Counted from the first letter of the stretch, positions 1,421 through 51,910 are shown. The stretch is 64,000 nucleotides of DNA from IMGVR_UViG_3300044680_000280:1-64000; one strand, 5' to 3'. The notes: generated from the letters alone by a model not told the origin. Numbers and translations: made by a program.

Positions 1421-1427
1421 TACACCG
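1421..1427 (-). promoter_or_regulatory. CGGTGTA upstream element
   Basis: 10 nt before ATG 1410, in a divergent intergenic region. Confidence 0.65.
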
Positions 1428-1465
1428 ATTAAATTTTATCCGATTGGAAAACACTACTTGAGATC

Positions 1466-1723
1466 ATGCGATTTTTACCGATCCTCAAGTTTTTGATCGC
1501 TGCCGTGACGTCCGTTTGCATCGGAGCTGGATACCGTGCATATCAGCTCCGAGATGGCAGTTCCCTGGATGAGGACATCGTGATGTACCTCGTCTGGACG
1601 GGAGGCATCTCGTTCGCCGTCCTCGTCCTCGTCTATCTAGCGTCGTACCGCTCCGAACAGCGCTACCGAATCATGGTGGACAGCCTCTACTCATCTCGTC
1701 CGCCGCCCCTAAAACTCAAGTGA
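1466..1723 (+). CDS. small membrane protein (2 TM)
   Basis: Two hydrophobic stretches (FLIAAVTSVCIGAGY; IVMYLVWTGGISFAVLVLVYLA). Confidence 0.6.
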   Translation: MRFLPILKFLIAAVTSVCIGAGYRAYQLRDGSSLDEDIVMYLVWTGGISFAVLVLVYLASYRSEQRYRIMVDSLYSSRPPPLKLK

Positions 1724-2351
1724 GCTTATTGAGAGATCGAGTGATGTTCGCCTGAGCCATCGATTCGTAGTTTGCCCGAAATACGTCCGTCTCGTAGATG
1801 TAGGGCCTCTTCAGAAAGTCGATGAGTACCTTGGCACGACCTGCTCGGAACACGTTCTCTGGGACGAACGAATACTCGTATCGAACTCCCTTTTCATATT
1901 CATCAAAAATGGCTTCATTCTCCCCCAAGATCGAAAGATCGACGTCAACCAGGAAGAGATATCGTTCGTGCATTCCCCCAAGCTCCGCGGAATGCCTCGT
2001 GTACGGGATCATATCCATTACATCAGCGATAAACCGCTCTTTGAGGTCCATTCGCCGACCCCAACGTTGAAATTCAAGGGCGCTCTTCACCTCGTTGTCC
2101 GTTCGACCGGGAACGTAGACGAGGTCATGCCAGAAGATTGCCATATCGACCCAGGGCTTTACCTCTGAGGGCACGTGCTTGTCCGAAACCTCGAGACACG
2201 CTTTGATGTGCGAGAGAGAATGGTACATACGTGACGACGCGTCATACGACGGCACAAGCTCTTCCAAAAAGGCCTTTTCCGAAGGTAGCGTCTTCGCCCC
2301 CAAAGACTTTGTGAGGGTCATCCACCGCTTTTCAAGCTCCTCAACCAGCAT
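1716..2351 (-). CDS. HD-superfamily metal-dependent phosphohydrolase
   Basis: YHSLSHI...AIFWHDLVY...DNEVKSA...FLVDVDLSILG...VRYEY motifs; start trimmed to ATG 2351. Confidence 0.8.
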   Translation of the reverse strand: MLVEELEKRWMTLTKSLGAKTLPSEKAFLEELVPSYDASSRMYHSLSHIKACLEVSDKHVPSEVKPWVDMAIFWHDLVYVPGRTDNEVKSALEFQRWGRRMDLKERFIADVMDMIPYTRHSAELGGMHERYLFLVDVDLSILGENEAIFDEYEKGVRYEYSFVPENVFRAGRAKVLIDFLKRPYIYETDVFRANYESMAQANITRSLNKLT

Positions 2352-2703
2352 CGTCGTTCTCCTCGGCAAAAACCTGAGACGCCAGCTTGTCCATATGCTC
2401 GTCAACGAGCTTCTTCATGTGAGCTTCGATGGTCTCAAGAGCAGAACGAAGGGGTGCGACGAACTCGGAACTCATGTGAATCTTCTCGAATCCGGACAAT
2501 GAATTGACGTAAACCTGAGCCGCAAAGCAAAGTTCCCGAAGCTTTTCGACCTCGCCAAACTGCCCCACGGATTTGCCGAATTTGTCGACGTCCTCGGGCG
2601 TCGGGTCGACGGTGACCCTCAAGTTCACCGTCACCAGTGCCGGGGTCACGTCGAGAACGATCTTCGGCTCCTCGGGTACCCTGAAACGTGGCTCGCTGGG
2701 CAT
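2341..2703 (-). CDS. hypothetical protein
   Basis: ORF with ATG 2703 lying 10 nt after the CGGTGTA element. Confidence 0.6.
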   Translation of the reverse strand: MPSEPRFRVPEEPKIVLDVTPALVTVNLRVTVDPTPEDVDKFGKSVGQFGEVEKLRELCFAAQVYVNSLSGFEKIHMSSEFVAPLRSALETIEAHMKKLVDEHMDKLASQVFAEENDDAG

Positions 2704-2712
2704 ACCCAAAGG

Positions 2713-3981
2713 TTACACCGAGCGGCGGAGAACGGCCCGAACGGCTTCCCTGGCGGTACGATCGGACGCGACTTTGACGTCAGGCATGATGAGATTCAGC
2801 CAGTGTTTGACGATGGGCTGCACTGTAGCTGGACCGTACCCGACCAGCAAACCCATCACCTCGCAGAATGATTCTTCAACGTTCTTTCCACCGTAACCCG
2901 TGATGGGATGCTTGACGGTAACGAACTTGACCCCATCAGCAAGAAGCTTCTCGAAGTCTTCCCTCGTATTGAATTCAACTCCGCCCGATCGCGCTTGCCC
3001 GTGAGCTATGACGTCAACTTGAAGGGCTAAGAGTGGGTCCACGTCCACGAGTTTTTCTACGAGTTCATGAGCCCAAGCGCCTTCTGGCCAGACCTTCAAA
3101 AGCTTGTCAACGTCAAGAGGTTCGGCATCGTCGCTAATTGCTTTTGACCAGAACGTGCGGTCCGCCTCGCTCAGGTACACCTTGTAGATGTGGTGCCCCA
3201 TTTCATGGGCAATAACGTGAGCCACGATATTTGGATTCTTGTGATCAAAGAACCCGCCCATAGCGATTTCAATATGATCCCCCTCATACCTACCGCCCTC
3301 GCCCATGGTAACATATGCATTCAGTCGAATGGGCAGCATATGCTGTAGAAGCCAGGGAAATACCTGTTTTGCACGGCGTCGAAAAACCCTAAGTCCTTCC
3401 TTGAAACGTTCCAAGAAGCCGTCTTCGTCATTCTCATACCCGACGACTGAAACATGAAAGCCCTCCATCTCGACTTTCTCAGTGTCCCGGGTTTTCACCG
3501 TGTAGTTAGGGGTGCCCGTGACTCGTTCTCGGTATTCCACGAACTCCTTCATCTCTTTCCAAAAGAGCCGTGCCTTCTCCTTTACCTTGGCTGCCCACTT
3601 GTCCTTCTCCATTTCGAAGCTGGCAAACAACGACTCCTGAGACTGAGGATTGTACTTGCTATCCGGGTACCCAAGAGGGAGATTGAGTTCAATTGAAAAA
3701 TCCCACCCGGTCTTCCGAAGCTTGTCACCGTACCACTTACGGTCCGATTCAGAGACCTTGTCATCATACTTGAAGTCGTGATTGAGAAAGGTCTCGAAAA
3801 CGATATGGTCGAAGTTCTTACGAAAGGCTTTGACACCGTCCCGAACCTTGTCCGCATCCTTGTAGCTTTTGATGCGAGGAATGTTCTTCATGAGTGTGAG
3901 AAAGTCCTTACGCAGGTTCTCAATCCACTCGAGGTCCAACGTGATGTCCTTCGCCACTCGGCGATCATAGCTGTACGTCAT
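2713..3981 (-). CDS. zincin (HExxH) metallopeptidase, anthrax-lethal-factor-like, with YDRR leader
   Basis: VIAHEMGHHIY plus downstream GYGGKNVEESFCE; N-terminus MTYSYDRRVAK; C-terminus KVASDRTAREAVRAVLRRSV. Confidence 0.7.
   Translation of the reverse strand: MTYSYDRRVAKDITLDLEWIENLRKDFLTLMKNIPRIKSYKDADKVRDGVKAFRKNFDHIVFETFLNHDFKYDDKVSESDRKWYGDKLRKTGWDFSIELNLPLGYPDSKYNPQSQESLFASFEMEKDKWAAKVKEKARLFWKEMKEFVEYRERVTGTPNYTVKTRDTEKVEMEGFHVSVVGYENDEDGFLERFKEGLRVFRRRAKQVFPWLLQHMLPIRLNAYVTMGEGGRYEGDHIEIAMGGFFDHKNPNIVAHVIAHEMGHHIYKVYLSEADRTFWSKAISDDAEPLDVDKLLKVWPEGAWAHELVEKLVDVDPLLALQVDVIAHGQARSGGVEFNTREDFEKLLADGVKFVTVKHPITGYGGKNVEESFCEVMGLLVGYGPATVQPIVKHWLNLIMPDVKVASDRTAREAVRAVLRRSV
2714..2720 (-). 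promoter_or_regulatory. CGGTGTA upstream element
   Basis: 10 nt before ATG 2703; overlaps the upstream TAA. Confidence 0.6.
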
Positions 3982-4310
3982 ACCGCCTCGTCAAGGAGTA
4001 GGTCGTCCGAACCACGCTCGTCGGACTCGTCAACAAGAAAACCGCCGTGCATCCCCTCATGAACTTCTCGGTGGCAGCGGCAGCATAAAAGCACGCACTT
4101 TTCGAGCTCGGGGCGGATACGTTCCCAGGAAGTCATTCGGTCCGAAATCGTGAAGTCTTTCTCGAGCGGATTCACATGGTGAAAGTCAAACGCGGCGGGC
4201 GTCCCATCATAGGTACATATCCTACACCGACCGCCAAGGTGGGCTACCGCCATCGCCCGTAAATCAGTCCGGCGTTTGTGCGCCGCTCGCCTCTTCTCCC
4301 AAGCTCCCAC
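3978..4310 (-). CDS. HNH endonuclease family protein
   Basis: GGRCRICTY...FDFHHVNP...ELEKCVLLCCRCHREVH; probable GTG start at 4310 (the ORF track extends to 4394). Confidence 0.8.
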   Translation of the reverse strand: MGAWEKRRAAHKRRTDLRAMAVAHLGGRCRICTYDGTPAAFDFHHVNPLEKDFTISDRMTSWERIRPELEKCVLLCCRCHREVHEGMHGGFLVDESDERGSDDLLLDEAV

Positions 4311-4317
4311 GAGGAGG

Positions 4318-4324
4318 CGGTGTA
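4318..4324 (+). promoter_or_regulatory. CGGTGTA upstream element (plus strand)
   Basis: 11 nt before the rnhB ATG; orientation flips with the gene. Confidence 0.65.
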
Positions 4325-4335
4325 ACAAGAGGACT

Positions 4336-5046
4336 ATGGCGGATCTTGACCCACGGAAGGTCGCGGAATATAAGGCTCGAGCCGAAGAGCTCATCCGTGA
4401 ACGGTCCCCGGATTACCTGATCGGCGTGGATGAGGTCGGCTACGGACCAATCGCAGGGCCGGTCGTAATCGGCGCCGTGGGCGTGCCCGTCGATTGGACG
4501 CCACCCACGGGCCTTACTGACTCCAAAAACCTCTCCAGAAGGCAAATAATAACCTTGGCGGGGGCGTTCTACGACGAGGTCCTCTCACGGGGGATTGGGA
4601 TCAAGTACGCCCTTTTCTGGGGCGACTCCGAAGAGATCGACAGAGACGGACTCGGAAAGGTCCGTAAGGGACTTCTTCAGTCCGGGGTGGAGTACATCCG
4701 GAGCACGTATCTCGAAACGGAGCCTTTCACCACTCTAGCTATCGTCGACGGCAATCTCAACATTCCGAATGCGGTCAGCATCCCGAAAGCCGATCTTGTG
4801 TGCCCCGTGGTGTCCATGGCCGCCGTCCTTGCCAAGTGCGCCCGTGACACATGGATGATCAACGTCGCGGCCAAAAAGTACCCGGGGTACGGTTTTGAGG
4901 AATCTGTCGGATACGACACACTCGAGCACCGCAAGGCGATCAAGGCTCTAGGTCCGTGTCCGATCCATCGGATGAGCACCCGGACCTTGAAAGAACGAGA
5001 CGTCTGGTCTCAACTCCCCAATCTAGGGAGAGGGGGAAAGTCATGA
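4336..5046 (+). CDS. rnhB: ribonuclease HII
   Basis: IGVDEVGYGPIAGPVV, DSK, VDGN, KAD...SMAAVLAKCARD, GY.T.EH...GPCPIHRMS. Confidence 0.93.
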   Translation: MADLDPRKVAEYKARAEELIRERSPDYLIGVDEVGYGPIAGPVVIGAVGVPVDWTPPTGLTDSKNLSRRQIITLAGAFYDEVLSRGIGIKYALFWGDSEEIDRDGLGKVRKGLLQSGVEYIRSTYLETEPFTTLAIVDGNLNIPNAVSIPKADLVCPVVSMAAVLAKCARDTWMINVAAKKYPGYGFEESVGYDTLEHRKAIKALGPCPIHRMSTRTLKERDVWSQLPNLGRGGKS

Positions 5047-5900: not shown

Positions 5901-5901
5901 G

Positions 5902-6138
5902 ATGGGTAACGAAGAGAAGGGCACTTTTGGTGCCTCATGCGATGGCTCGGTTCTGTTAGCCGAGCCTCAGTACGACGTGGACGGCACCATCCTCGACAAC
6001 GGCATCCAACTAATAGGAAACGCGACTAGGCAGTCGAACGGACTCTATACGTCTCTTGCCAATGTGAACGGCTCTTTATGTACCGTTGAGTTCAAACTGA
6101 CAACAGCGATTAGACCTTCGGTGGTTTCGGAAACTTGA
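5902..6138 (+). CDS. hypothetical protein
   Basis: ATG 1 nt after the dam stop codon. Confidence 0.5.
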   Translation: MGNEEKGTFGASCDGSVLLAEPQYDVDGTILDNGIQLIGNATRQSNGLYTSLANVNGSLCTVEFKLTTAIRPSVVSET

Positions 6139-6478: not shown

Positions 6479-6486
6479 GACGGCCC

Positions 6487-6669: not shown

Positions 6670-6692
6670 GTCCCTAAGCTTAGCACCAAAGG

Positions 6693-8117
6693 TTATCGGT
6701 CGGTAAGATCTTCCAATGGCTGAGGTGGAACACCGTGTAGCTGATTGGGAGCCTCCTCGTCGACCCAGAGAGAGGTCAACATCGATTTCCCGCGTTTTTT
6801 ATCCATGTAGTACATGGCTTGTTGGGGAACTTCGAAAGCTGCTCTGATACGTTGGCTGTAAGGCCCGTACCCAATGAGCGACCCATTGACTACGGCTCTA
6901 CCATAGTCAAGTAGGGAGTGATGGTGCCCTATGTTGTGGACGTCGGCCCTTTTGACAAGGTCCCACATTGGTAGGGACTTGAGCAACGGAATGCCGAGTC
7001 CACCGACCCCACCCATGTACTTCACATCGTCACCGTGGTGGAAGTGAAGAGTCCAATCGTAGACCTGAACGTACTGGTGTGGGGAGTTGGTGATTTCGAA
7101 GTGAATCCGTTTCTCATTGCGGAACTCATCCGCCAGGGAGTGGTACATGAGCCACTCAAAACTATTTGCAAATCCAGAGGAGATTCGAGGCTTTGCAGTC
7201 GTCCTTCCGTGATTACCGTAAGAACACGGAACCTCGATATGGGCAAAGTCGAGGCGATTCAGAAGGGTCCAAATCCCATCACGAATTCTAGGGAGTAGCC
7301 ATCGAATCGTTTCCGTGGGCGAGAGGGCATTCGTTTCAACCAGTTCCTCGTGAATGTAGCCGGTCATTAAATCGCCACCAAGCCAGAGCACCAGATCGTT
7401 GATGGTGAGTCGCTTGCTCGCACGATGGTGCTCGATGTTCCAAATGATTCCATCAAACAAGCGGCGAATTCTATGATCGGCGATATCGAGGTTATACTCG
7501 TTACGATAGGCAACGCTCTCCGGTTCAACCGGCTCTTCAACGTGCCAATCGGAACATAGGGCTACGGCTGTCATTTCTCTCACACCCGAGTTCTTCTCTC
7601 GAGGCATGATACGGGGCGGCGCCTTGAAGCTATGTACAACGTCGATGAACGACTGTCGAGCGCGGGCCTCACGTAGCTGGTCGACGAGCTGTCGGATCTG
7701 CCTCTTGTCCCGAGAGATTTCTTCTTGCTGTTCCCTTCGCTCCACCGGGTCGAAGTCGGGCTCGTCATCATCGCCCTCGTAGGCCTTCTTTTCTTCTTTA
7801 TCATCGAGGAGCTCTTCCTCGGAAGGGCTGAGTTCCTTGCAGTAGGAGGAGGGGGCGTTCAGCTTGTTTCGCTGAAACGCGGCTCTCAGTGCCCCTTGGG
7901 TGACCGGGTGGTCAACGTTGTCCTGGATCTCCTTCAGGGCTTCCCTGAATTGGTAGATGGGGTACTTCGACAAGATGAGTTTGGCAACACGAAGATCACT
8001 CTCACTCCATACTAAGGACATTGGCGCTCCGTCTTGGGGTTTGGTCACGTGCGCGTGAGCGCGCACGTACGTAGATGAAACTGTCGTATTGATTAGAGGT
8101 TCATCGACGAATTTCAC
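6693..8117 (-). CDS. calcineurin-like metallophosphoesterase with N-terminal helical/coiled-coil region
   Basis: SDWH, GGDLMTG, GNHG, HHGD and GHHH metal-binding motifs. Confidence 0.8.
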   Translation of the reverse strand: MKFVDEPLINTTVSSTYVRAHAHVTKPQDGAPMSLVWSESDLRVAKLILSKYPIYQFREALKEIQDNVDHPVTQGALRAAFQRNKLNAPSSYCKELSPSEEELLDDKEEKKAYEGDDDEPDFDPVERREQQEEISRDKRQIRQLVDQLREARARQSFIDVVHSFKAPPRIMPREKNSGVREMTAVALCSDWHVEEPVEPESVAYRNEYNLDIADHRIRRLFDGIIWNIEHHRASKRLTINDLVLWLGGDLMTGYIHEELVETNALSPTETIRWLLPRIRDGIWTLLNRLDFAHIEVPCSYGNHGRTTAKPRISSGFANSFEWLMYHSLADEFRNEKRIHFEITNSPHQYVQVYDWTLHFHHGDDVKYMGGVGGLGIPLLKSLPMWDLVKRADVHNIGHHHSLLDYGRAVVNGSLIGYGPYSQRIRAAFEVPQQAMYYMDKKRGKSMLTSLWVDEEAPNQLHGVPPQPLEDLTDR

Positions 8118-8123
8118 ACTCCC

Positions 8124-8162
8124 AAATGAAAAAGGGCTCGTCGGATGTTCCGACGAGCCCTT
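8124..8162 (-). terminator. intrinsic terminator downstream of the glycosyltransferase
   Basis: Perfect 14-bp inverted repeat aagggctcgtcgga-tgt-tccgacgagccctt (8132-8162), running into a T tract on the minus strand. Confidence 0.75.
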
Positions 8163-8168
8163 ACACCG
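8162..8168 (-). promoter_or_regulatory. CGGTGTA upstream element
   Basis: 44 nt before GTG 8117. Confidence 0.55.
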
Positions 8169-8190
8169 ACCCGAAATCGTAATCGTCAGA

Positions 8191-9270: not shown

Positions 9271-9309
9271 CCTGATTTCCTGGGTTGTGGTTGGGGTTCG
9301 TTCTTAGAG

Positions 9310-9316
9310 TACACCG
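9310..9316 (-). promoter_or_regulatory. CGGTGTA upstream element
   Basis: 39 nt before ATG 9270. Confidence 0.6.
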
Positions 9317-15240: not shown

Positions 15241-16238
15241 AAGTTGTTCCCATACACCGACGGTGCCCGCTCGAATTCTTCAATGAGGTACTCAATCACG
15301 GCGTAGGGATTACCCGTGTTGGGGTGCAGGGTAATGTTGAAGCCGGCCGCCTTCGTATGCCCGCCGCCCCCGTATAACTTGGCGAGCGCCGAACAATTGT
15401 ACGTTGTGCGACTCCGTGTAGAAACAACCATCTTGGTGACCCGACCTTGATCGGTATCCTCCTCGAAGAAGCTAAATCCTGCCGCAAGGTCAGCGTCCGA
15501 ACCGATATACTCCGCTACGCTGCTTGACTTCGTGGACCCCTCGAAGATTGCGACGCGAGTTCCCCGACTCGTAGTAAAGCGACGGGCCCCTTTCACCGTT
15601 TTTTCCGTGGATTGGTCATCTTTTTCAATGAGTACCTCCCCCACCCACTGAAATTGGGCTCGCCAGTTCTCACTAATGTCAGAAAGGTACATCTTCGACC
15701 AACGTTCCCACGGCATGAAAGACAGAACCTCTTTTTGAGCTCGAGCTTCCTCCCAAAATGGCGATTGCCGTTGCCAGGTATCGTAGACTCCAGCCAACAT
15801 GGCAAAGCGTTCGGCGAACAAGGACAGCCGATCAAATGAAGCCACGTGAATACAGGGGTCATCACGACGATAACCCCTCAAAACTTTCCAAACTTCACGG
15901 AAGGCGAGCGTTGCCCCACACACTCCTGGGTTTTCCAACTCATCAGCAAACACTCCCCGGTTCCCGAACTTGGCAACCGTCTCCTTTGCCGACTTGTGGT
16001 GGTCGAGCACGATGGCGCCCGCGTCAACGAACTCCTGTGCCCGTTCAGGTGGAGGAGAAAAGTCGACGAACAGCATCCCGGGTTCCGCTTTCATATTGCG
16101 GTACTCGTCGTTACCGTATTGGTGAAAGAGAATCTCTGCCGTAGGAATGGCGTCGTGGATCAAAATCGCAGAGGCCTTGCCATCTGCACAGTTGTCGTGA
16201 CTGATGACAACTTTGATACCGCTGAGGTCTAGGGTCAT
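15237..16238 (-). CDS. DHH/DHHA1 phosphoesterase (NrnB/oligoribonuclease-like)
   Basis: SHDNCADG, VDFS, VLDHHKS, GGGHTKAAGF. Confidence 0.85.
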   Translation of the reverse strand: MTLDLSGIKVVISHDNCADGKASAILIHDAIPTAEILFHQYGNDEYRNMKAEPGMLFVDFSPPPERAQEFVDAGAIVLDHHKSAKETVAKFGNRGVFADELENPGVCGATLAFREVWKVLRGYRRDDPCIHVASFDRLSLFAERFAMLAGVYDTWQRQSPFWEEARAQKEVLSFMPWERWSKMYLSDISENWRAQFQWVGEVLIEKDDQSTEKTVKGARRFTTSRGTRVAIFEGSTKSSSVAEYIGSDADLAAGFSFFEEDTDQGRVTKMVVSTRSRTTYNCSALAKLYGGGGHTKAAGFNITLHPNTGNPYAVIEYLIEEFERAPSVYGNNL

Positions 16239-16248
16239 ACCCCCTATC

Positions 16249-16255
16249 TACACCG
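16249..16255 (-). promoter_or_regulatory. CGGTGTA upstream element
   Basis: 10 nt before ATG 16238. Confidence 0.6.
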
Positions 16256-19691: not shown

Positions 19692-20231
19692 CTATACACC
19701 GCCCAACAGAGTTTGAAGTACCCGAAGATGCCTTTTATCAAGGTTGCCCGCCTTGATATTCGTGAAATTGCAGGCTTTCACCTGGTAACAAGTAGCTTCT
19801 ACCCCCGGTCCAGCCTTCAAACCATCGCAATTTTCACACCTAGATGTCCCGAAGTTCAACCGAAACCTGAATTGGGCCGCCTCATGCTGAACCTCGCGGT
19901 AGTGCCTAATGAGCTCTTCCGCTGCCCTGTATACCCTCGTGGCGTCTCCTGTTTTGAAAGACTCTAATAGGTTTTCGGCTAGGTCTTCTTGGTCGGGAAC
20001 TCCCGTTGAAGGTCCACCGGACAGATGATCCCCTGTCTTCGTAGATACTGTTCGACCCGTCCCTCCGCGTTCGCCGCCATCAGTCCCGACAACCTCGGAT
20101 CCTTCGTCTTCTCGGCGAGATCGATTGCCGACCTCATGAGGCTCTGCCATTCGTCGTGGGTTTTGGCCGCTCGAATGGTGGATTTTTTGCCGGGAAGGGA
20201 CTTCAGACGAGGGCGGTTGACCATGACTCAC
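19692..20231 (-). CDS. Cys-rich hypothetical protein (the 5' half overlaps another ORF in the -1 frame)
   Basis: C-terminal CENC...C...C; the N-terminal half looks off-frame. Confidence 0.4.
   Translation of the reverse strand: MSHGQPPSSEVPSRQKIHHSSGQNPRRMAEPHEVGNRSRREDEGSEVVGTDGGERGGTGRTVSTKTGDHLSGGPSTGVPDQEDLAENLLESFKTGDATRVYRAAEELIRHYREVQHEAAQFRFRLNFGTSRCENCDGLKAGPGVEATCYQVKACNFTNIKAGNLDKRHLRVLQTLLGGV
19695..19701 (-). promoter_or_regulatory. CGGTGTA upstream element
   Basis: 38 nt before ATG 19656; overlaps the upstream TAG. Confidence 0.55.
19979..20224 (-). CDS. hypothetical protein, 81 aa
   Basis: Mostly G/C third codon positions in this frame; helical-looking sequence. Confidence 0.55.
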   Translation of the reverse strand: MVNRPRLKSLPGKKSTIRAAKTHDEWQSLMRSAIDLAEKTKDPRLSGLMAANAEGRVEQYLRRQGIICPVDLQREFPTKKT

Positions 20232-22371: not shown

Positions 22372-23249
22372 CCCTCAGAAGATACACCAGCGGCGTCTTC
22401 GAGGGCTTCCCTAATCGTATCCGGATCCAAATCTTTGAGTGCTTTCGCCGAAATGGCGGCGATGAGAGCCTGAAAAACCTCATCCTGAGTGGGGGGCCGG
22501 TCGTCTTTCGACGCGAGGCGCTCCATGAGCTTTGAGACCAGCTCGACCGAGTGGTGACCGATCTCCCCAAACTCGTGTAGAGTGGGTAGGTGCTGTAGGT
22601 GCTTCGTGACCGCTTTGACCGCGATCTTCTTTGCGGTAGAGCTAACGAACGAGCTCATCACGCCCTTCGTGATGGCAACGGCGCCCGCTCCAAGACCGAA
22701 CCCCGCCCCTAAGGCCCCTGAAACTGCCGCAACCGTACAGTGGATGGCCACTTCCCGTATGGCGTGCTTTTGCTTCTTGGAGACTTCCTTGCCGGTCATC
22801 CAAGCATGGATGCCCTCGCCCGCCTCCTTGAACTCCTTGACCTCATGTTTGGCTACATTGTAGGCACTCTCGACGTATTTCATCGGGGCGCTCAGAATCG
22901 ACTTGTGCGCCTTGAGTAGAGTTTCTCGACGATGATCCTCATCATCAACGAATTTTTTGACGGTCGACGGGGTCTTGTGGAGGAACTCCTGGGCCTTCGA
23001 GGACAGACTCTTTGCCAGGTCCTTCCAAGTCAACTTAGGCCCGGCACCGTGTTCGTGCTCATCGTGCTCGACACCGTGACCTCCGTCCGTCTTCTTTTCA
23101 GAAATCTCCCCCGGCTTCTTGACCGTATGATTTTTCGGGTCCGCCTTGGGATGTTCGTGCAGGTAGTCCTTCAGCGCCTTTGGAGTCGGAAACTCGAAGG
23201 CGAGCTGGTAACGAGCCGCCACACGCAGACTCAACACGTCCCTACGCAT
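22368..23249 (-). CDS. hypothetical protein with RVAARY leader
   Basis: MRRDVLSLRVAARYQLA; Gly/Ala hydrophobic segment VAAVSGALGAGFGLGAGAVA. Confidence 0.75.
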   Translation of the reverse strand: MRRDVLSLRVAARYQLAFEFPTPKALKDYLHEHPKADPKNHTVKKPGEISEKKTDGGHGVEHDEHEHGAGPKLTWKDLAKSLSSKAQEFLHKTPSTVKKFVDDEDHRRETLLKAHKSILSAPMKYVESAYNVAKHEVKEFKEAGEGIHAWMTGKEVSKKQKHAIREVAIHCTVAAVSGALGAGFGLGAGAVAITKGVMSSFVSSTAKKIAVKAVTKHLQHLPTLHEFGEIGHHSVELVSKLMERLASKDDRPPTQDEVFQALIAAISAKALKDLDPDTIREALEDAAGVSSEG

Positions 23250-24469: not shown

Positions 24470-24475
24470 TACACC
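24470..24475 (-). promoter_or_regulatory. GGTGTA upstream element
   Basis: 4 nt before ATG 24465. Confidence 0.45.
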
Positions 24476-26534: not shown

Positions 26535-26541
26535 TACACCG
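26535..26541 (-). promoter_or_regulatory. CGGTGTA upstream element
   Basis: 11 nt before the clpX ATG. Confidence 0.6.
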
Positions 26542-29535: not shown

Positions 29536-29542
29536 TACACCG
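29536..29542 (-). promoter_or_regulatory. CGGTGTA upstream element
   Basis: 11 nt before the folA ATG. Confidence 0.6.
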
Positions 29543-30508: not shown

Positions 30509-31333
30509 CTACACCTCTGAGAGACCGTGCTTGATCATCTTCCGAACGAAATCCGCTTGGCGAAGTTCCCTAACGCACAAGGTCGGGTCTGCCGGGTATG
30601 ACTCTGCTATAGCCTGACATGAGTCACACACATTGATGTACGGTCTCTCGTACGTTGCTGGCTGATAACAGATTCCACACTTCGTGAGGAGTTCGGCCGC
30701 CATCTTGAGGTCATCTTTCAAGTTCTGAATTTGACGATGCGCCGAGAGGTCGTAGTGCCGCGTCCCCGAGAAGTTTTTGACCCGTTCAATAACGTGAGCC
30801 CAGTCACGTACTCGGTACTGCTCCTCAACCGGTATATTTCGTGTGTGAAAAGTCGGCCACACCATTGCGAGACCGTGCGGGTGATGTTCGTGCCAAGTGT
30901 AAACGTTCGACGGTTTGTCATCTAGGCAGATATCGGCGTCCACGAGATACTTGGCCGCCGTGTGAACTACGTGCTCATGCCGTTTGAACCCGAAGTGCTT
31001 CTCGAGCCACGCGTCTCGCTCGTAAACCCAATGCCGCGAATCGAATGGGGAGGTCACGACAAACAGATCGACGTGTCTGCGTAGCTCCTCGACGGCCTCC
31101 TGTGACCCGGCACGAATGGGTAGGGACCAGCAAAAGCCTTGAGACCCCGCGATTTCAAAGAGAATCTTGTTCTCCTCGGGGGTGAAGATATCGAACACGT
31201 CCCAAGACGTGCCAGGATGGTCGAAAAGGTCGATTTCCTTGTGGAGAACCTTTCGGGCAATATCGAGAATCGCCATTCGGTACTCATTAAGTACCTCATC
31301 CACGTCAATCCACATTCGTTTGCGGGGCTTCAC
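30509..31333 (-). CDS. 5'(3')-deoxyribonucleotidase (NT5C, HAD) with C-terminal Cys module
   Basis: IDVDEVL, VVTSP, LDDKPSN; C-terminal CGIC...CDSC. Confidence 0.85.
   Translation of the reverse strand: MKPRKRMWIDVDEVLNEYRMAILDIARKVLHKEIDLFDHPGTSWDVFDIFTPEENKILFEIAGSQGFCWSLPIRAGSQEAVEELRRHVDLFVVTSPFDSRHWVYERDAWLEKHFGFKRHEHVVHTAAKYLVDADICLDDKPSNVYTWHEHHPHGLAMVWPTFHTRNIPVEEQYRVRDWAHVIERVKNFSGTRHYDLSAHRQIQNLKDDLKMAAELLTKCGICYQPATYERPYINVCDSCQAIAESYPADPTLCVRELRQADFVRKMIKHGLSEV
30510..30515 (-). promoter_or_regulatory. GGTGTA upstream element
   Basis: 9 nt before the thyA ATG; overlaps the upstream TAG. Confidence 0.55.
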
Positions 31334-31343: not shown

Positions 31344-31350
31344 TACACCG
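31344..31350 (-). promoter_or_regulatory. CGGTGTA upstream element
   Basis: 10 nt before GTG 31333. Confidence 0.6.
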
Positions 31351-34680: not shown

Positions 34681-34686
34681 TACACC
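34681..34686 (-). promoter_or_regulatory. GGTGTA upstream element
   Basis: 10 nt before ATG 34670. Confidence 0.55.
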
Positions 34687-35363: not shown

Positions 35364-35939
35364 CTATACACCGGGAGTCGAGCGGAATCGTACTTTTGAT
35401 CCAGGACTCACGACCTTTTCGTTGGTCTTCTCCGGTTCAGCTACCTCCCAAGCGTCCTTCTTTTCCTGGGGGAGAACATTTCCCACCATACGGGGTCCCT
35501 GATCCGGAGTATTCAACGTTGGCAAACGGATGAGCTGAGAACGTTCGAGCTTTAGTGGATGAGCTGGGACTGGGAACGGTTCAGCTACGCCTTTCGTTTC
35601 AGTCTGAATAGAAGCGGGCTTGACCGCTTCCTTGTCGTTCAGATCTCGAGGATCCACCCACGAGGAGGTCCAAACCTCGGGCGCCGGACCAGGATCGATC
35701 ATGAGGAACTTCTTCCCCGAAATAGTCTCGTAGCGTGAATCGCTAGGGTCCAGCCTCGGTGGATTGGCGAAAAGGTTCTCGTACCAGGAACCAACACGCT
35801 TTTCGAACTTGCTTTGACCAACTCGACTCCTCGTGCACTCCGTCTGCATGCATCGATCGCAGAAGGTCATCTTGAACTGGTCAAGAGGAACGTTCTGATC
35901 ATTACACACCTTGAGAAGGTCACTTCTATTCGAGGGCAT
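35364..35939 (-). CDS. hypothetical protein with N-terminal Cys motif
   Basis: CDRCMQTEC. Confidence 0.65.
   Translation of the reverse strand: MPSNRSDLLKVCNDQNVPLDQFKMTFCDRCMQTECTRSRVGQSKFEKRVGSWYENLFANPPRLDPSDSRYETISGKKFLMIDPGPAPEVWTSSWVDPRDLNDKEAVKPASIQTETKGVAEPFPVPAHPLKLERSQLIRLPTLNTPDQGPRMVGNVLPQEKKDAWEVAEPEKTNEKVVSPGSKVRFRSTPGV
35367..35373 (-). promoter_or_regulatory. CGGTGTA upstream element
   Basis: 42 nt before ATG 35324. Confidence 0.55.
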
Positions 35940-38812: not shown

Positions 38813-39242
38813 CGGTCACCTCTTGAACGATAATTACATACACCCCCTCCCGCCAAAGCTTGATAATATCGTTGCCAAGCTGGCGAACTTTCTCATCCTC
38901 CGAGATCTCGGGCTCGTAACACCAGGGGAGCCTCTTCGCGACAGGAAAACACGTCTTTTTGTCAAAGAAAACGCAGTTTTTCCGTTGGTAACAGCGTGTG
39001 GCCTCTTCTGGCAGTTTTTTGAGGGCCCCCCACGGCGGTAACCCGAGTGTCTTGAACAGAGGGCTGGACCACCCGTAGAGGCAATGATCCATGACCTCTT
39101 GGGACACGACCGTCAGAAGGGAACACACCGATGACCCCTGCAAAGGGCGCCACTCCTCTTCCCAGACGCCGTCGAGCTCGTAGATAAGGAAAAGCTCGAG
39201 CGGTCCCATCTCCGATGTATTGACCCTCAACCGTCTGGACAC
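38802..39242 (-). CDS. hypothetical protein in the replication operon
   Basis: 146 aa with Cys cluster CYQRKNC...TC...WC. Confidence 0.65.
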   Translation of the reverse strand: MSRRLRVNTSEMGPLELFLIYELDGVWEEEWRPLQGSSVCSLLTVVSQEVMDHCLYGWSSPLFKTLGLPPWGALKKLPEEATRCYQRKNCVFFDKKTCFPVAKRLPWCYEPEISEDEKVRQLGNDIIKLWREGVYVIIVQEVTDAG

Positions 39243-43996: not shown

Positions 43997-44003
43997 TACA
44001 CCG
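43997..44003 (-). promoter_or_regulatory. CGGTGTA upstream element
   Basis: 11 nt before the SNF2 ATG. Confidence 0.6.
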
Positions 44004-46562: not shown

Positions 46563-46586
46563 AAATAGGGGCCACCATAAAAGGAA

Positions 46587-46781
46587 TCAGCTCTGAGGAC
46601 GTAAAGGGATATACCCTCGTTCCCACTGGTCGAGTCGACTCAATCTATCTTGAAGTCGAGAGATCTGCTCAGTGGAAAGAACGTTTCCGATCATCACACC
46701 ACGAATTTGCTCCCGCATGCGAGCGGCTGCCTTGGAACGAACATCAGCAGGAATGTCGAGATATGTCAGGTGACCAATCAC
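46587..46781 (-). CDS. small hypothetical protein
   Basis: ATGA coupling to the 1450-aa gene. Confidence 0.55.
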   Translation of the reverse strand: MIGHLTYLDIPADVRSKAAARMREQIRGVMIGNVLSTEQISRLQDRLSRLDQWERGYIPLRPQS

Positions 46782-49700
46782 GAGTCCCTCCTCGACAGGG
46801 TGATCGTTGCGGGATTGGTGTCAAGGCGAACATTGTCGTTCAGGACAGGATGTCCTTCGATACGGTAGAGGTCCGCTGCCGAGTATCCCTCGTTCGCGCC
46901 GTTCGTTCCGATGTAAACGAACGCCGGGTGGGGATTGTTGTCCGTCAACTGCTGAACGTTCGTCAAAACGAGTAGCATGAGCTCGTCGCCAGCACTGACC
47001 TCGTTTCCTCCAACGGAGGTTACCGCGTTGCGAACGAGCATCGCGCGACCAGCTAGTACGTTCGAGTGGCTGGCTGGAGCCGTTACGGAAGTGTATTCTG
47101 CTGCCACTTCCCCGCCCGGGTGTGCCCCATTCATGGTAAAGAGAGATCCCCCTCGATTGACGCGGAAATTCACGAGGAGGTTGTAGCTGACTGGTTCCCC
47201 GTCGACCTGAGCCACCAAATCACCGGCAGTGCCAGACGCCACGGAAGCTGTATCGAGAGGAACCTCGATTTGTTCGTATTGGGTGTTCGAGGTAAGGTTC
47301 GAACGAGAAGACGCCTCTCCGTGAGCTCCAAGATAGAGGAGCGGTGCAAAGGTGCCATTACCCAAACTACCGCCTCGGAAGTCCTTGTCGCGCCACAGGG
47401 CGCCCAAGGGAAGCCTTTCGGTAGCTCCTAGGTACTGTGTCCCGACCTCGGTCGTGTCGTCCGCTAGGGCGCCGACGAGAGTCGTGGGACGCGCCTGACC
47501 TGAGGTCGAGGGCGGGTACTGGGAGGGGTTCTCGTAACCAACATTACGGAAGTCCATCGAAGTTGCAGAAGCAACGTCCCCAGAAAATCGACCCGTACCC
47601 ATCGTGGTGACGAACCCAACAGACGCGAGGACCTCGAGAGCCTTCTGGTTCGGTCGAGTCAGTGCGGTCTCCGTGAGCTCCGTGGAATCGACCTGGTAAG
47701 CGCTAGCGGTCTGAATCGGGCCTAGGTACTGAGGAATGTCGACGTAGTTTGTTTGGCTGCCCCACGGATCGCCCTGGTAGGGGGTCCTGGAATAGTTGAC
47801 CAAAACGGTGTCGGTTGGCGTTGCAGGGCCTGGGAGAACGCTCGTCGGACCCGAAATACTGACCCCGATGTTCGAGGCTCGTGTCACGGTGTTACCAGCC
47901 TGTGACGTCTGACGCGACCTGGAAAGAACGAAACGAGGCTCCTGGGTGATGTCGAACGTCCCTCGGTCGAAGCCGAAGACGCTAGCCTCGATGACGTAGT
48001 TCCCGCTGGAGAAGCTCGTAATCGGGTTGACCGTGGAACGTGTGATATCGATGCAATCGGCGTTCAAAACGAAGGTTGAGTCGCCGTCCGCATCAATTTC
48101 GATCCAGAACGTCGCCGTGCTGACATTTTGGCGAAGAAGGTTCGTTGCGGTCGTACCCGTTTTGGGAGTACGATCCGTGCCGTTATAGGCGGAACCGTTG
48201 AGCTTGTAATCACCCGCTTCGTAAACGGCGAAGAGCCGAGCGATCCCGTAGAAGGGCGGAAGCTGTAGACCTTGACGGTTCAGATTGCGTGTATCCGAGA
48301 AGAACTGCATGCCCGCGCCCGTTAGGCTGCCAGGCAGGGAAACCGCCGTGTTGTATGTTGCGACGGGGAACGGAGAGGACCCACTGAAGTTGGCCGTGGT
48401 GAACACAGCCCACGTGAGGCTTCCGGAGGCAGCATAAGAGACGTAATTGCTATCTCCCGTTGCGGGTGATGCGTACTCACCCGAAAGGAACATGAAGTTG
48501 ATACCCTCGGAAAACGTCGTTGACGCCGCGTTGACGGGCAGAATCGGAACGTCGACTTCACCCCAGTTGGGGACCATCGAACGTGGGAGGGTGACATAAA
48601 TGTTCTTCGTGTTCAAGTAGCCTGTTGAGCTGAAATCGGTTGAGCACGAAAAGAGTCCGAGAGGGTCCGTCGTAGTCCACTTGGACGTGACACCGTCCGC
48701 CGCCTTGGTGGGCATCAATCCTTGAGCGAGGGTAACCGTATAGCTAAGAGAGGAGCCTGTCGGAACAGAACGGTCAAGAACGACGTGTCCGCTGTCCGTG
48801 TAAGAAACGATGGTGTAACGCCCGGGTTGTGAACCGTTCGTGATTTGAAGGGCATATCCGACTTGACCGCTTGTAAATGCCGCAGCAGTCGTATCCGCAA
48901 AGGTCGTCGACCCGTTGGCCGTACCCGTCGAACTTGTGACAACTGGCGATGGAGGAGTGAGCGCGGGGTTGTAGGAGCTTGCGACGTTCGCTGCCGTACC
49001 ATCGAGCGTGATGAAGGACGTCGGCCAAATGATCTGACGGAACGGCGCGATGATAGCGGTTTTGCTTCCCAGATCCGCGTAAAATGTGGCCGTAACGGGA
49101 AGATTTCGCTTGTATAGGGCGTTCGTTGTATTTCCGCCTCGGTAACGACTCCAGAGAGGGGCCCAACCAATCTTGGCCGGAAAATTCGTTGAGGGAACGC
49201 CCGCGGTGTTGACAAGGAGTTCGGACGCGGGGGAGACGAAAGTCATACTTTGAATGCTGTTCGGCCGACGGGCAAGTCCACGTCCGGGTCCGTACTGCAC
49301 GTGCAACGTGACGTAGATCTGATTTGCCGTTGCGGGGAAGCCCCCACCAAGTGTGACGACAAGGTTCGTATTTGGAGCCCCGCCCCCGGTTACCGTGTAC
49401 AAACTCGTCGGAACGTTCTCTTGTTGACCATCGATTCGAAGGGTAACGGCTGAGCTCAAGCTGTCATTGACCCAACGGATTTGATCGGTATCCGAACCAG
49501 GGACCGACGTTTGAAGAGCAGCAATCGGGAAAGTGAAAGAGTCCCCGGCACTGAACATGCTGGATGTTGCCTGGACCGTCTGGGTTGCCGTGACTGACAG
49601 GGAGTAGCCAGTATTGCTCACCGTGGCGGGAGGGACAGATCCAGTCGGCTGAATAACGGTTTCGATCTTTTGAATGACGGCAGCGTCTGAGAAAATCTGT

Positions 49701-51130
49701 CGGAATCCATCGGGAGCATCGAGTTCCGTGATGCCAAGTCCGGCTGTGTTCTGCGAGATCTTGTCTTGATAAACGACGTAAGGCCCTTGAGGACCCGCAC
49801 CCGTGCGCTTCCAGGTCGAACGGAGTGTGCCTCGAAGGAGTTTATCGAGGTTCGTGTCAAGCAGAGCCTGGTAATCGAACCCGTTGGGGTTGACCACGTG
49901 ACGAAGATCGAGAAGGTCCGTGAAGGCGATTTGGTCCGAAAAAAGTCCGTCGGGGCGAGTTGAAATGACCGAGATGGTCGACCCTGACGCGTGGGCGTCC
50001 GCCCGCGTGCCATTGACGCCTCGAACGAGACCGCTGATCGTAGTCCCCGTGATGGCGGAATACGTCAAAAGCTCGTCGCCGATTTGAATCAGAACGGCGG
50101 TCGCAGGAGTTGCGGGTAGCGGGATGTTCGTGGCGCTGACCAATGTCGCCATCGTGGCAGTCGAGGAGATGGTAGCGGAGAGAGTCGGAACCGTTGAAAA
50201 TGTCGCGATACCCGTACGATCCACAGCGAGAGGATTGCGATTGAATCCACCGTTCAGATTCTGAGAGGGGTCACCATTCCAGTTCACCGAGTTTCGACGG
50301 AAAACACCCGCAAGCGGAATCGCGTAGGTGTAGCCGTCCACCGTACCGAGAGCGTTCTGGGTGCCGTCGCCAGCTCGCCAAAGACCCGGGTCTCCTAGCG
50401 TAGAACGCATGTTCGTGAACGTATAGTTCGTCGCGGATGAGGCGGCACCCTGACCGAAAACCACCGTCGGGTCGAATCCATCGGGATTCGTCGTGAGACC
50501 AACGAGCCCCTTAGCAACCCGAATACGGTACTGAACCTGCACTCGTTCCGTCGTCTCGAAACCGAGTTCCGGATCGATGAGATCGTCGGCGAGGTAGGAG
50601 TACCCTCCCTCCACATTGCCGTATTTGTAAACGGCAGAGCTAGAAGGTTTGTTCGTTGCACTGGGATTGGGGGCGAGCTGCGCAAGCCAAACTTCGAGAA
50701 AAACGAAGTCCACGCGAGAGTCGCCGCTGTTCGAGGGTGGGGGATCCATCGCGATGACGTTGTACGTGTCCACGTCGTCTGGAGATCCAGGAGGAGTGCC
50801 CGTGCGGGTGCCCGTGACCGGAATCAACCAACCGTTAACCACGGCCCATTCGACGGCCTGAACCTCTCCTGTTCGCTGACGGCCAAAACGCCACCAATTG
50901 CTATACGTGGAATTCGTGATGAAAGAAGTCGGGTTGTTCATCTCGTTGCCGAGCCAACCTGAGACCGTGTCACGAAGAACGATCTTTCGGCGCCAACCGG
51001 TCGCGAGATCTTGCAGCAAAGTGAGCTCGGAATCGAGCGGTGGTTTACCTTGCTGCCAAATGACATCCAGGTATTGGGTGGACGACGGGTCCAACACTCG
51101 GGAAACACCTGAACCGTAGTAAAGAGTCAT
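46778..51130 (-). CDS. large virion structural protein (baseplate/tail), paralogue of 54306-57371
   Basis: 1450 aa, S/T/G-rich; N-terminal QQGKPPLDSEL resembles phage baseplate/tail N-termini. Confidence 0.75.
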   Translation of the reverse strand: MTLYYGSGVSRVLDPSSTQYLDVIWQQGKPPLDSELTLLQDLATGWRRKIVLRDTVSGWLGNEMNNPTSFITNSTYSNWWRFGRQRTGEVQAVEWAVVNGWLIPVTGTRTGTPPGSPDDVDTYNVIAMDPPPSNSGDSRVDFVFLEVWLAQLAPNPSATNKPSSSAVYKYGNVEGGYSYLADDLIDPELGFETTERVQVQYRIRVAKGLVGLTTNPDGFDPTVVFGQGAASSATNYTFTNMRSTLGDPGLWRAGDGTQNALGTVDGYTYAIPLAGVFRRNSVNWNGDPSQNLNGGFNRNPLAVDRTGIATFSTVPTLSATISSTATMATLVSATNIPLPATPATAVLIQIGDELLTYSAITGTTISGLVRGVNGTRADAHASGSTISVISTRPDGLFSDQIAFTDLLDLRHVVNPNGFDYQALLDTNLDKLLRGTLRSTWKRTGAGPQGPYVVYQDKISQNTAGLGITELDAPDGFRQIFSDAAVIQKIETVIQPTGSVPPATVSNTGYSLSVTATQTVQATSSMFSAGDSFTFPIAALQTSVPGSDTDQIRWVNDSLSSAVTLRIDGQQENVPTSLYTVTGGGAPNTNLVVTLGGGFPATANQIYVTLHVQYGPGRGLARRPNSIQSMTFVSPASELLVNTAGVPSTNFPAKIGWAPLWSRYRGGNTTNALYKRNLPVTATFYADLGSKTAIIAPFRQIIWPTSFITLDGTAANVASSYNPALTPPSPVVTSSTGTANGSTTFADTTAAAFTSGQVGYALQITNGSQPGRYTIVSYTDSGHVVLDRSVPTGSSLSYTVTLAQGLMPTKAADGVTSKWTTTDPLGLFSCSTDFSSTGYLNTKNIYVTLPRSMVPNWGEVDVPILPVNAASTTFSEGINFMFLSGEYASPATGDSNYVSYAASGSLTWAVFTTANFSGSSPFPVATYNTAVSLPGSLTGAGMQFFSDTRNLNRQGLQLPPFYGIARLFAVYEAGDYKLNGSAYNGTDRTPKTGTTATNLLRQNVSTATFWIEIDADGDSTFVLNADCIDITRSTVNPITSFSSGNYVIEASVFGFDRGTFDITQEPRFVLSRSRQTSQAGNTVTRASNIGVSISGPTSVLPGPATPTDTVLVNYSRTPYQGDPWGSQTNYVDIPQYLGPIQTASAYQVDSTELTETALTRPNQKALEVLASVGFVTTMGTGRFSGDVASATSMDFRNVGYENPSQYPPSTSGQARPTTLVGALADDTTEVGTQYLGATERLPLGALWRDKDFRGGSLGNGTFAPLLYLGAHGEASSRSNLTSNTQYEQIEVPLDTASVASGTAGDLVAQVDGEPVSYNLLVNFRVNRGGSLFTMNGAHPGGEVAAEYTSVTAPASHSNVLAGRAMLVRNAVTSVGGNEVSAGDELMLLVLTNVQQLTDNNPHPAFVYIGTNGANEGYSAADLYRIEGHPVLNDNVRLDTNPATITLSRRDS

Positions 51131-51166
51131 TTACATTCCTCGCACTTGTCGGGGTTATCAGTAAGT

Positions 51167-51173
51167 TACACCG
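51167..51173 (-). promoter_or_regulatory. CGGTGTA upstream element
   Basis: 36 nt before ATG 51130. Confidence 0.55.
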
Positions 51174-51176
51174 GAG

Positions 51177-51845
51177 CTAAAAGATCAAAGCCCACGACCC
51201 AACGAAGAGTTTCGAGGGGGTATTGTTGGTAATTTGCACCGAAAAGTTCATTCCCTGGTCGGCGGATGGGATGCTGAAGTCCATGGAGTCGGAGATTGGT
51301 AGATAGGTCACTCCGTTATTGAAGCTCACCTGAGCCGTTGTGTTTCCAGGAGAGGTTGGAATTTCATTGTACATTCTCGAATACCGCCCACCGGACGGAT
51401 CGGAATCGATGTACGAAAAGACTTCCCACGTAAAAACCCCGTTCGTAGGCGCTTCCGTAAGAGTGGCAGTCGAGGTAAGGGTACCGCCGGGATTGATCCA
51501 AATCGAGCCCCGATCCCCCAACCCTCCCGACGTAACGGTAACGCCCGTCGTAGAAAGCATATCGTTGAATGTGATGTAGGGGTAGCCTGCAAACGCACTG
51601 AGCAGACCCGTGTACTTTTTGGCGAGTAGGTCCCCCAAGTTTTGAGGAATTGACGGTTGAAGAGTTACAGGATCGATGAGAGCCGCGTTGTTTGGGACTC
51701 TCACAACGAAAGCTCCATTCACGAGTGTCTGGCCGCTCGGAGAATTGTCGACGGCAATGATCGGCGCCCCCTCGAATGGAGGCGATGATGGTGGGGCCAC
51801 CGTCGCAACGGTCGAAAATAGGTCTATGAGGTAGTGGGAGCTCAT
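51177..51845 (-). CDS. putative virion structural protein
   Basis: S/T/P/G-rich beta-type sequence within the tail cluster. Confidence 0.6.
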   Translation of the reverse strand: MSSHYLIDLFSTVATVAPPSSPPFEGAPIIAVDNSPSGQTLVNGAFVVRVPNNAALIDPVTLQPSIPQNLGDLLAKKYTGLLSAFAGYPYITFNDMLSTTGVTVTSGGLGDRGSIWINPGGTLTSTATLTEAPTNGVFTWEVFSYIDSDPSGGRYSRMYNEIPTSPGNTTAQVSFNNGVTYLPISDSMDFSIPSADQGMNFSVQITNNTPSKLFVGSWALIF

Positions 51846-51903
51846 GTATACTCACTCGGGGTTGCAGGTGACGGACTGCACTCCGTTTCGTAGATTTTTA
51901 AGC

Positions 51904-51910
51904 TACACCG
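51904..51910 (-). promoter_or_regulatory. CGGTGTA upstream element
   Basis: 58 nt before ATG 51845. Confidence 0.55.

Follow-up and report, generated by a model that had tools for sequence, protein, structure and literature searches.

We describe a short DNA element, GGTGTA, most often preceded by C, that lies at a nearly fixed distance ahead of the start codons of a large class of genes in an uncultivated bacterial megaphage from peat. The element was noticed in a 64,000-nucleotide stretch of this phage (IMGVR_UViG_3300044680_000280:1-64000, hereafter the window), where an initial annotation had listed it before 17 gene starts. Judged from sequence, and with a probability of about 0.7 in our estimate, (C)GGTGTA is a minimal phage promoter, free of a -35 element, that gives rise to leaderless or near-leaderless mRNAs.

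In this reading, the role in transcription start, the exact start position and the identity of the reader are what we infer. (Y)CGGTGTA would be the core recognition element, and RNA polymerase (RNAP) would start about 10-11 nucleotides (nt) after its final A. The ATG would be placed at the start point in about 85 % of functional copies. The resulting mRNA would be leaderless, with +1 at the A of AUG, or would carry 1-4 extra nt, and would be translated without a Shine-Dalgarno (SD) sequence. A minority of copies, 22-58 nt upstream, would yield a leader with an ordinary SD, and some copies would drive untranslated RNAs (tmRNA, tRNAs). The class would serve about 170 genes, roughly 30 %, on both strands, including replication, nucleotide metabolism and many small genes. 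Its reader would most likely be the host RNAP redirected by a phage factor.

Results

Positional enrichment across the phage genome

The window matches the reverse strand of a 156 kb virus record (G000) at bases 45151-109150, and the first 64 kb of a 406,734-bp IMG/VR contig (G001, IMGVR_UViG_3300044680_000280) have the same sequence. The two records share 109 kb, with G000 reaching 47 kb past the start of G001, and were merged into 453,746 bp of one phage. This 454 kb reconstruction covers about 95 % of the genome; a Joint Genome Institute (JGI) contig of the same phage measures 463.5 kb. Throughout, the gap is the number of nt between the final A of GGTGTA and the start codon.

In the 156 kb record, 32 of the 99 copies of GGTGTA have the ATG of an open reading frame (ORF) of at least 60 codons at a gap of 9-12, whereas none of 59 hexamers of the same composition exceeds 5, except GTGTAG (13), which is the motif shifted by one base. 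Counted over 454 kb without a gene model, 144 of 371 copies have the ATG of an ORF of at least 30 codons at these gaps. Gaps of 9, 10, 11 and 12 account for 9, 70, 52 and 13 copies, where the background would give about 1-3 for each gap, and 122 of the 144 copies have a gap of 10 or 11 nt. The SD peak of the same genome is broader, with GGAG spread over 5-10 nt. The positional enrichment that the initial annotation expected, having placed the signal in position and spacing, is therefore present genome-wide.

Gene calls give the same picture. GGTGTA lies within 25 nt before 111 default starts among 591 called genes, compared with 4.8 expected. Once in-frame alternative starts are allowed, 140 genes carry the motif at 9-12 nt, and about 28 further copies precede small ORFs missed by the gene caller. 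A rule blind to the motif, which takes the first ATG of each ORF of at least 70 codons, ranks GGTGTA first among upstream hexamers in this phage (148 vs 9.5 expected) and in two relatives, G002 (52 vs 4.5) and G003 (IMGVR_UViG_3300013121_000005; 30 vs 3.9), with a modal gap of 10 in all three. The logo reads Y-C-GGTGTA, the base before the hexamer being C at 107 and T at 29 of 140 sites. Upstream of the motif no block resembles a -35 element, and a weak A/T patch at 24-28 nt is all that stands out; the -35 position holds no information, and a TTGA-like word occurs at that distance in only 6 of the 140 sites.

Conservation in related phages

GGTGTA-N10/11-ATG is found in all 13 related records of at least 83 kb (G001-G013) and exceeds the reversed-pattern control in the twelve largest (for example 116 vs 5, 63 vs 3, 51 vs 1 and 38 vs 0). 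A complete 407 kb genome with terminal repeats has 34 matches vs 7 in the control. The two relatives compared most closely differ from this phage in guanine-plus-cytosine (GC) content and in their DNA polymerases (G002, 63 % GC and a polymerase 59 % identical; G003, 53 % and 47 %). Of 29 G002 orthologues of motif genes, 17 keep the motif; of 149 orthologues of non-motif genes, only 4 have it (odds ratio 51, p = 1e-12). Its flanks at the G002 orthologues cannot be aligned. Purifying selection acts on the element, which is a hallmark of the clade.

Start-site signatures and target genes

As with the motif, its spacing and its conservation, the signatures near the ATG and the distribution among gene classes can be observed directly. 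The start codon is ATG in 90 % of motif genes. A pyrimidine occupies -1 in 85 % of them compared with 60 % of SD genes (p = 1e-5), G stands there in 6 %, and the -1 pyrimidine stays tied to the ATG at gap 11 as at gap 10. A pyrimidine at -1 followed by A at +1, as in C|ATG, is the usual context of a transcription start. If the TA of the motif lies at -12/-11, a gap of 10 would put +1 on the A of the ATG with the pyrimidine at -1, and the range of gaps from 9 to 12 would match the usual flexibility of start-site choice. The initial annotation had proposed a 5′ untranslated region (UTR) of a few nt; a true leaderless start agrees slightly better with the geometry. SD tetramers precede 19 % of motif genes, 42 % of other genes and 14 % of internal ATGs.

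The genomic setting of the motif points to a promoter. It stands before 37 % of the heads of divergent units, whereas among internal genes the share is 19 % (p = 2e-5). In fifteen divergent gene pairs both genes have a copy, and their ATGs can be as close as 36-49 nt, too close for a separate promoter and leader to fit. About 13 copies are leadered, at gaps of 22-58 nt, and an SD of their own follows about 10 of them. The motif also precedes RNA genes: the tmRNA gene at 45 nt here and at 15 nt in G002, where the flanks are different, and tRNA genes at 19 nt (G002 tRNA-Pro) and at 22 and 59 nt (G003), the chance of a copy within 60 nt of a gene being about 1 %.

By gene class, copies are concentrated at small genes of either strand and at genes for replication and nucleotide metabolism; in some 150 kb of giant co-directional genes there are hardly any. 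Because these giant genes are presumably structural, the motif class is probably also a temporal class, early or middle. The roughly 150 copies inside genes, near chance level, are probably non-functional.

A second class of promoter-like elements

The phage has a second class of start-proximal elements with a more conventional appearance, TTGAAC-N16/17-nGTAYT (mostly TGTACT), with 45 matches vs 5 in the reversed control. It is confined to small-gene regions at about 260-406 kb of G001, with none in the window, and is absent from G002 and G003. Fourteen members have the start codon exactly 6 nt after the downstream hexamer, and C occupies -1 in all of these whose context was read; another 19 have a leader of 16-23 nt with an AGGAG-type SD. 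This class suggests that transcripts beginning at the ATG arise routinely by initiation in this phage, and that a split into leaderless and SD-leadered members marks a real promoter class. The GGTGTA class, which is split in the same manner, would then behave alike with its own offset.

Sigma-70 needs A at -11; the "-10" of the TTGAAC class has G at this position.

When the two classes are aligned on their shared GTA, GGTGTA is offset by 2 nt. Together with its poor agreement with a -10 box, described below, this makes a different specificity determinant likely.

Two further words were considered. A putative late-gene word, TTCCTTTTAT, is not enriched (16 vs 11 in the reversed control) and was rejected. 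In G003, TTCGTTAA occurs genome-wide about 6 nt before ATGs (TTCGTT 20 vs 5.2 expected, CGTTAA 8 vs 1.0) and may mark a further class of promoters close to the start codon, peculiar to that phage.

Candidate readers

The initial annotation expected a phage sigma factor or RNAP to read the element. Proteins with a helix-turn-helix (HTH) of the sigma-4 type are present, while neither an RNAP catalytic domain nor a single-subunit RNAP nor a sigma region 2 was found in about 454 kb or in G002 and G003; a six-frame search of these sequences for the DxDGD-type signature of the phiKZ/AR9 multisubunit RNAPs was likewise negative.

Two sigma-4-type HTH proteins stand out. The first, of 379 amino acids (aa) (P0001, G001 395783-396922, minus strand), has a C-terminal sigma-70 region 4 and is labelled a sigma-70 family factor by JGI. 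No homologue was found in G002, G003 or a collection of 5.8 billion proteins. As an orphan whose N-terminus is not conserved in the relatives, it was set aside.

The second, g231 (P0002, 212 aa, G001 187892-188530, minus strand), begins with an invariant peptide, continues with an acidic linker and two sigma-4.2-like HTHs, and ends in an invariant motif. Its identity to the proteins of G002 (76 %) and G003 (68 %) is above that of the DNA polymerase (59 % and 47 %), and more than 728 homologues occur on contigs of 400-570 kb. A fold search with its AlphaFold model (pLDDT 75) matches isolated sigma-4 domains only. Since an invariant DNA word and a near-invariant DNA-binding protein are conserved together, g231 is a candidate reader of GGTGTA, with roughly one chance in four of being the right one; the co-occurrence is not phylogenetically independent. 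A wider proposal, that across a clade of 400-570 kb megaphages the tandem-HTH, sigma-4-only g231 family retargets host RNAP to GGTGTA and makes about a third of the genes leaderless, is doubtful as a whole. If true, g231 would represent a novel type of factor for phage promoter specificity, linked to SD-independent translation on a large scale.

A 90-aa sigma-4-like ORF, g230, adjoins g231.

Discussion

Weighing the promoter reading

The description of the element in the initial annotation as a -10-like promoter for near-leaderless mRNAs is supported in its core: eight independent lines of sequence evidence favour a promoter that leaves the mRNA with little or no leader, over a terminator or an ordinary SD. 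The TA of the motif also fits -12/-11 by geometry. The classical features of a -10 element are missing, and this is the first of several points that weigh against our interpretation. In the gap-10 class the -7 position shows no conserved T (A 29, C 5, G 17, T 13), as a sigma-70-type -10 hexamer would have, and TG abuts TA directly (TGTA), one base out of the extended -10 register; for these two reasons the element does not look like a standard sigma-70 -10 box. Copies inside genes are neither depleted nor avoided (151 vs about 108 expected). Hairpins with a U-run occur upstream of motif genes no differently than upstream of SD genes (3 of 82 vs 4 of 140). The spacer between motif and ATG has a mean anti-SD complementarity of -2.9 kcal/mol vs -1.4 in controls and may make a weak contribution to translation. 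As to the reader, Pfam and NCBIfam searches of the 454 kb, G002 and G003 for sigma region 2, Rpb1, Rpb2 and ECF sigma factors gave sigma-4 matches only; g231, with its two sigma-4-type HTHs and no detected sigma-2 domain, does not have the make-up of a sigma factor, and its gene lies within a motif-poor block. Finally, the gene calls come from our own simple caller (591 genes, 90 % coding) and carry no benchmark.

Alternative explanations

The best surviving alternative, which we consider unlikely, is also a promoter. Transcription would start at a run of G 2-4 nt ahead of the ATG, and a phage polymerase that escaped recognition might be responsible. The gap-10 spacer, purine-rich and C-poor, has a weak consensus A-K-G-A-T-A-G-G-G-Y, with T/A at positions 5-6 and G at positions 7-9, and so resembles the TATA|GGG layout of single-subunit RNAP promoters, whose dimensions are similar to the 17 nt from the C of the motif to the ATG. 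However, this pattern fades at gap 11, where the -1 pyrimidine stays at the ATG, and leaders of 3-4 nt suit neither SD-led nor leaderless initiation well. Nor were two-barrel catalytic motifs or the single-subunit RNAP family PF00940 found in about 454 kb, a search in which the PF00940 control matched nowhere and about 95 % of the genome was covered.

It is quite improbable that GGTGTA acts instead in the mRNA, as an unusual SD-like site or as the site of a translational activator or repressor, with transcripts starting further upstream. A fixed spacing to the start codon would be expected of a ribosome-binding site too, GGTG is complementary to part of the anti-SD (CACC), spacer complementarity to the anti-SD is above background, and 82 of the 140 motif genes are operon-internal. 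The distance is wrong, however. GGTG lies 12-13 nt from the ATG, about 8 nt off the SD register, whereas 5-10 nt is the most frequent distance of SD tetramers in this genome. To pair in SD register, GGTG would have to lie about 3-6 nt from the ATG, taking the established SD/anti-SD sequence, which may differ from the 16S sequence of the host. A translational element also does not belong before tmRNA and tRNA genes, which have no ORF, or ahead of leadered genes (22-58 nt) that have an SD of their own. It leaves the -1 pyrimidine bias unexplained, and it sits poorly with the enrichment at unit heads, with the back-to-back pairs of 36-49 nt and with the lack of any other conserved upstream motif. 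Phage-encoded S1, IF3 and S21, which might act as translational readers, were searched for and not found.

Very improbable, too, is a signal in RNA, GGUGUA, that directs an endoribonuclease of phage or host to cleave about 10 nt further downstream and so frees leaderless mRNAs as well as tRNA and tmRNA precursors. Cleavage would account for the fixed distance to the AUG, for operon-internal copies and for copies before tRNA and tmRNA genes. Against this, heads of divergent units are enriched, and the tight pairs would need unseen promoters inside neighbouring genes. The Y(-1)/A(+1) context is that of transcription starts, the canonical-looking TTGAAC/TGTACT promoters produce the same ATG-at-start geometry by initiation and not by cleavage, and no candidate nuclease is linked to the motif.

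That the pattern is a product of chance, composition or coding, such as a conserved C-terminal peptide or stop-codon overlap, can practically be dismissed: several copies do overlap upstream stop codons, but nothing similar arises in shuffles or in 59 permutations of the same composition, many copies are in divergent or long intergenic DNA where their strand has no gene upstream, and the motif is kept at orthologous starts in phages of different GC content whose polymerases are 47-59 % identical.

An intrinsic terminator, which the initial annotation had already discounted, does not fit either. The motif has no dyad, switches strand with the genes and sits in divergent regions, and a hairpin follows only the copy at 8162.

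Comparison with known systems

The promoter proposed here has a geometric counterpart in the leaderless genes of Actinobacteria and Deinococcus, where a TANNNT -10 box lies 6-7 nt before the start codon, ATG predominates and SD sequences are absent; Cortes (2013) and Shell (2015), cited in PMC7403470 and PMC8244752, are reportedly the leaderless-gene studies behind this picture. The geometry matches, with TA at -12/-11, a gap of 10 and +1 on the A of ATG. Here, however, the conserved part lies upstream of the TA (CGGTG) and not downstream, and T(-7) is not conserved.

The late promoters of T4 (TATAAATA) are read by gp55 and gp33 with the host core RNAP, and the late mRNAs have SD leaders. They are alike in being short and confined to the -10 region without a -35 element and, as we propose for GGTGTA, in being tied to one temporal class and read by host polymerase with a small phage specificity factor. 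They differ in sequence and in their reader: no gp55-like sigma-2 domain was found, and the candidate g231 has two sigma-4 domains.

Middle and late transcripts of the Thermus phage phiYS40 are largely leaderless, with a -10 element at a fixed distance from the ATG. In the Thermus phage P23-45, early promoters have -10 and -35 elements, whereas later ones lack the -35 element and depend on the -10 region; its protein gp39 disables sigma-4/-35 recognition, and the -35-less middle and late promoters stay active (PMC7403470). P23-45 and phiYS40 thus resemble the present phage in combining two promoter classes. In contrast to theirs, CGGTGTA is not TATAAT-like, has no T(-7) and carries its TG off the extended -10 register, and this phage is 3-5 times larger.

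The late promoters of the jumbo phages AR9 and phiKZ (AACA-N6-TA/G; TATG) are very short and start-adjacent, and were found by upstream alignment (PMC5312081). They are read by phage multisubunit RNAPs and leave UTRs of 26-491 nt, with no leaderless transcript seen in phiKZ (PMC5312081, PMC8244752). In the present phage, by contrast, searches detected no phage RNAP, and the motif keeps a fixed distance to the ATG.

The SD sequence in its extended form (AGGAGGTGA) also contains GGTG and stands upstream of start codons. Unlike an SD, the motif is spaced about 8 nt too far away, its TA and preceding C would not pair with the anti-SD, and some of its copies precede RNA genes or lie well ahead of SD-led genes.

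Significance

Phage promoters without a -35 element that give leaderless mRNAs are known already; what is new is this motif, its scale (about 170 genes) and its conservation across a megaphage clade. We know of nothing on how gene expression is organised in the huge phages of metagenomes, almost none of which have been cultivated. A clade-wide word at a fixed distance from the ATG provides a handle, from sequence only, on their transcription units and temporal classes. It also corrects start calls: about 48 default starts were moved, and about 28 small genes had been missed.

Many genes of huge phages have no identifiable SD (PMC7162821). The motif class would account for many genes without a recognisable SD in such genomes, and predicts that a large share of the megaphage proteome is made from leaderless mRNAs. 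The analysis further nominates g231, a specific and very conserved putative DNA-binding protein, and, if the reader is identified, the element is a candidate for a compact orthogonal promoter.

Motif copies in the window

The window holds 34 copies of GGTGTA, compared with 17.0 +/- 4.0 in dinucleotide shuffles (34 was reached in 0 of 100), and 28 of them lie on the coding (minus) strand. The initial list bears re-reading: all 17 coordinates carry the hexamer on the strand given, C precedes it at 14, and the reported division into ten gaps of 9-11 nt, six far-upstream copies and one gap of 4 nt stands. To these we add three start-linked copies, at 15253, 22383 and 38839. The copies below are on the minus strand and read CGGTGTA unless otherwise stated.

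Among the ten with a gap of 9-11 nt, 1421..1426 lies in a divergent intergenic region with a gap of 10 to the ATG at 1410 (75-aa ORF, 1183-1410). The copy at 2714..2719 (gap 10, ATG 2703, 120 aa) ends in the TAA stop of the upstream 422-aa gene (GGTGTAA). On the plus strand, 4319..4324 heads a divergent unit with a gap of 11 to the ATG at 4336 of RNase HII (236 aa). Four copies are kept at the G002 orthologue: 16249..16254 (gap 10, ATG 16238, 333 aa with a DHHA1 domain), 26535..26540 (gap 11, ATG 26523, ClpX-like, 428 aa), 31344..31349 (gap 10, GTG 31333, NT5C nucleotidase, 274 aa) and 43997..44002 (gap 11, ATG 43985, helicase, 572 aa). The remaining three are 29536..29541 (gap 11, ATG 29524, dihydrofolate reductase, 179 aa), 30510..30515 (AGGTGTA, gap 9, ATG 30500, thymidylate synthase, 318 aa), which overlaps the upstream TAG (GGTGTAG), and 34681..34686 (TGGTGTA, gap 10, ATG 34670, AAA ATPase, 534 aa). 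Two of the added copies have similar gaps: 15253..15258 (gap 12, ATG 15240, DNA methyltransferase, 533 aa) and 22383..22388 (TGGTGTA, gap 11, ATG 22371, 277 aa).

Five leadered copies are followed by an SD. They are 9310..9315 (gap 39, ATG 9270, 359 aa; AGGA-type), 19695..19700 (gap 38, ATG 19656, 208 aa; GGAGA), 35367..35372 (gap 42, ATG 35324; AGGAGA), 51167..51172 (gap 36, ATG 51130, 1450-aa ORF; GAGGA) and the added 38839..38844 (GGGTGTA, gap 26, ATG 38812, DNA polymerase of 950 aa; AGAGG). The copies at 19695 and 35367 overlap an upstream TAG (GGTGTATAG). Also leadered is 51904..51909, with 48 or 58 nt, depending on start choice, to the start of a 222-aa ORF (51177-51845). The copy at 24470..24475 (TGGTGTA), 4 nt from the ATG at 24465 (404 aa), is atypical and has no explanation.

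The copy at 8162..8167, 44 nt from a start at 8117, is leadered or atypical. It is directly followed by an intrinsic-terminator-like hairpin of 14 bp with a U-run (8127..8162, minus strand; dG -30.1 kcal/mol, z -4.9) that begins at the last A of the motif, and a start 10-11 nt on would fall inside its 5′ arm. We speculate that transcripts begun there would escape the terminator that halts read-through.

An additional CGGTGTA at 4223-4228 (minus strand) lies in the divergent region opposite rnhB, 241 nt before the 422-aa gene (start 3981). The only ORF that follows, at gap 12, has 12 codons; a long leader or a small RNA may start from this copy.

The phage and its other features

The gene content of the phage (about 40 tRNAs, a tmRNA, a family-A DNA polymerase, helicase, ClpX, ThyA, dihydrofolate reductase and RNase HII), together with the canonical SD tetramers upstream of many of its genes, identifies the source as an uncultivated bacterial megaphage of at least 454 kb. 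Among the sequencing runs searched, it was found in four DNA runs, all from peat metagenomes and kept as contigs, and in no RNA run. IMG/VR tags G000, G001 and G002 as "provirus"; they seem, however, to have been trimmed from a megaphage of at least 454 kb. Megablast found no match among cultured phages, and the best tblastn matches of the DNA polymerase there are 25-33 % identical. Among cellular proteins, the best relative of the ClpX-like gene is from Marinobacterium (42 % identical), which says nothing on the host.

Giant co-directional ORFs of 1450, 797, 1021, 657, 1302, 2706, 2178 and 1965 aa run from 46778-63961 of the window on to about 130 kb of G001. The first five have no PHROG match, and the 1450-aa ORF has no Pfam match.

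A tRNA(CUA) amber suppressor adjoins a tRNA with a four-base anticodon (ccta) at about 127625-127780 of G000:C1. The stop-codon recoding that this brought to mind found no evidence: 136 of the 591 genes end in TAG, and translation table 11 leaves the giant ORFs uninterrupted.

About 38 tRNA genes and the tmRNA gene (G001 224741-225104, minus strand; tag ANDNGIPDLAIAA) form a cluster at 218-246 kb of G001, with small GGTGTA genes interspersed on the opposite strand. At about 230037 of G001 two copies of the motif form a palindromic head-to-head pair, CATGGTGTATCCTTACACCATG, in which the divergent ORFs are 16 nt apart and each motif lies in the spacer of the other.

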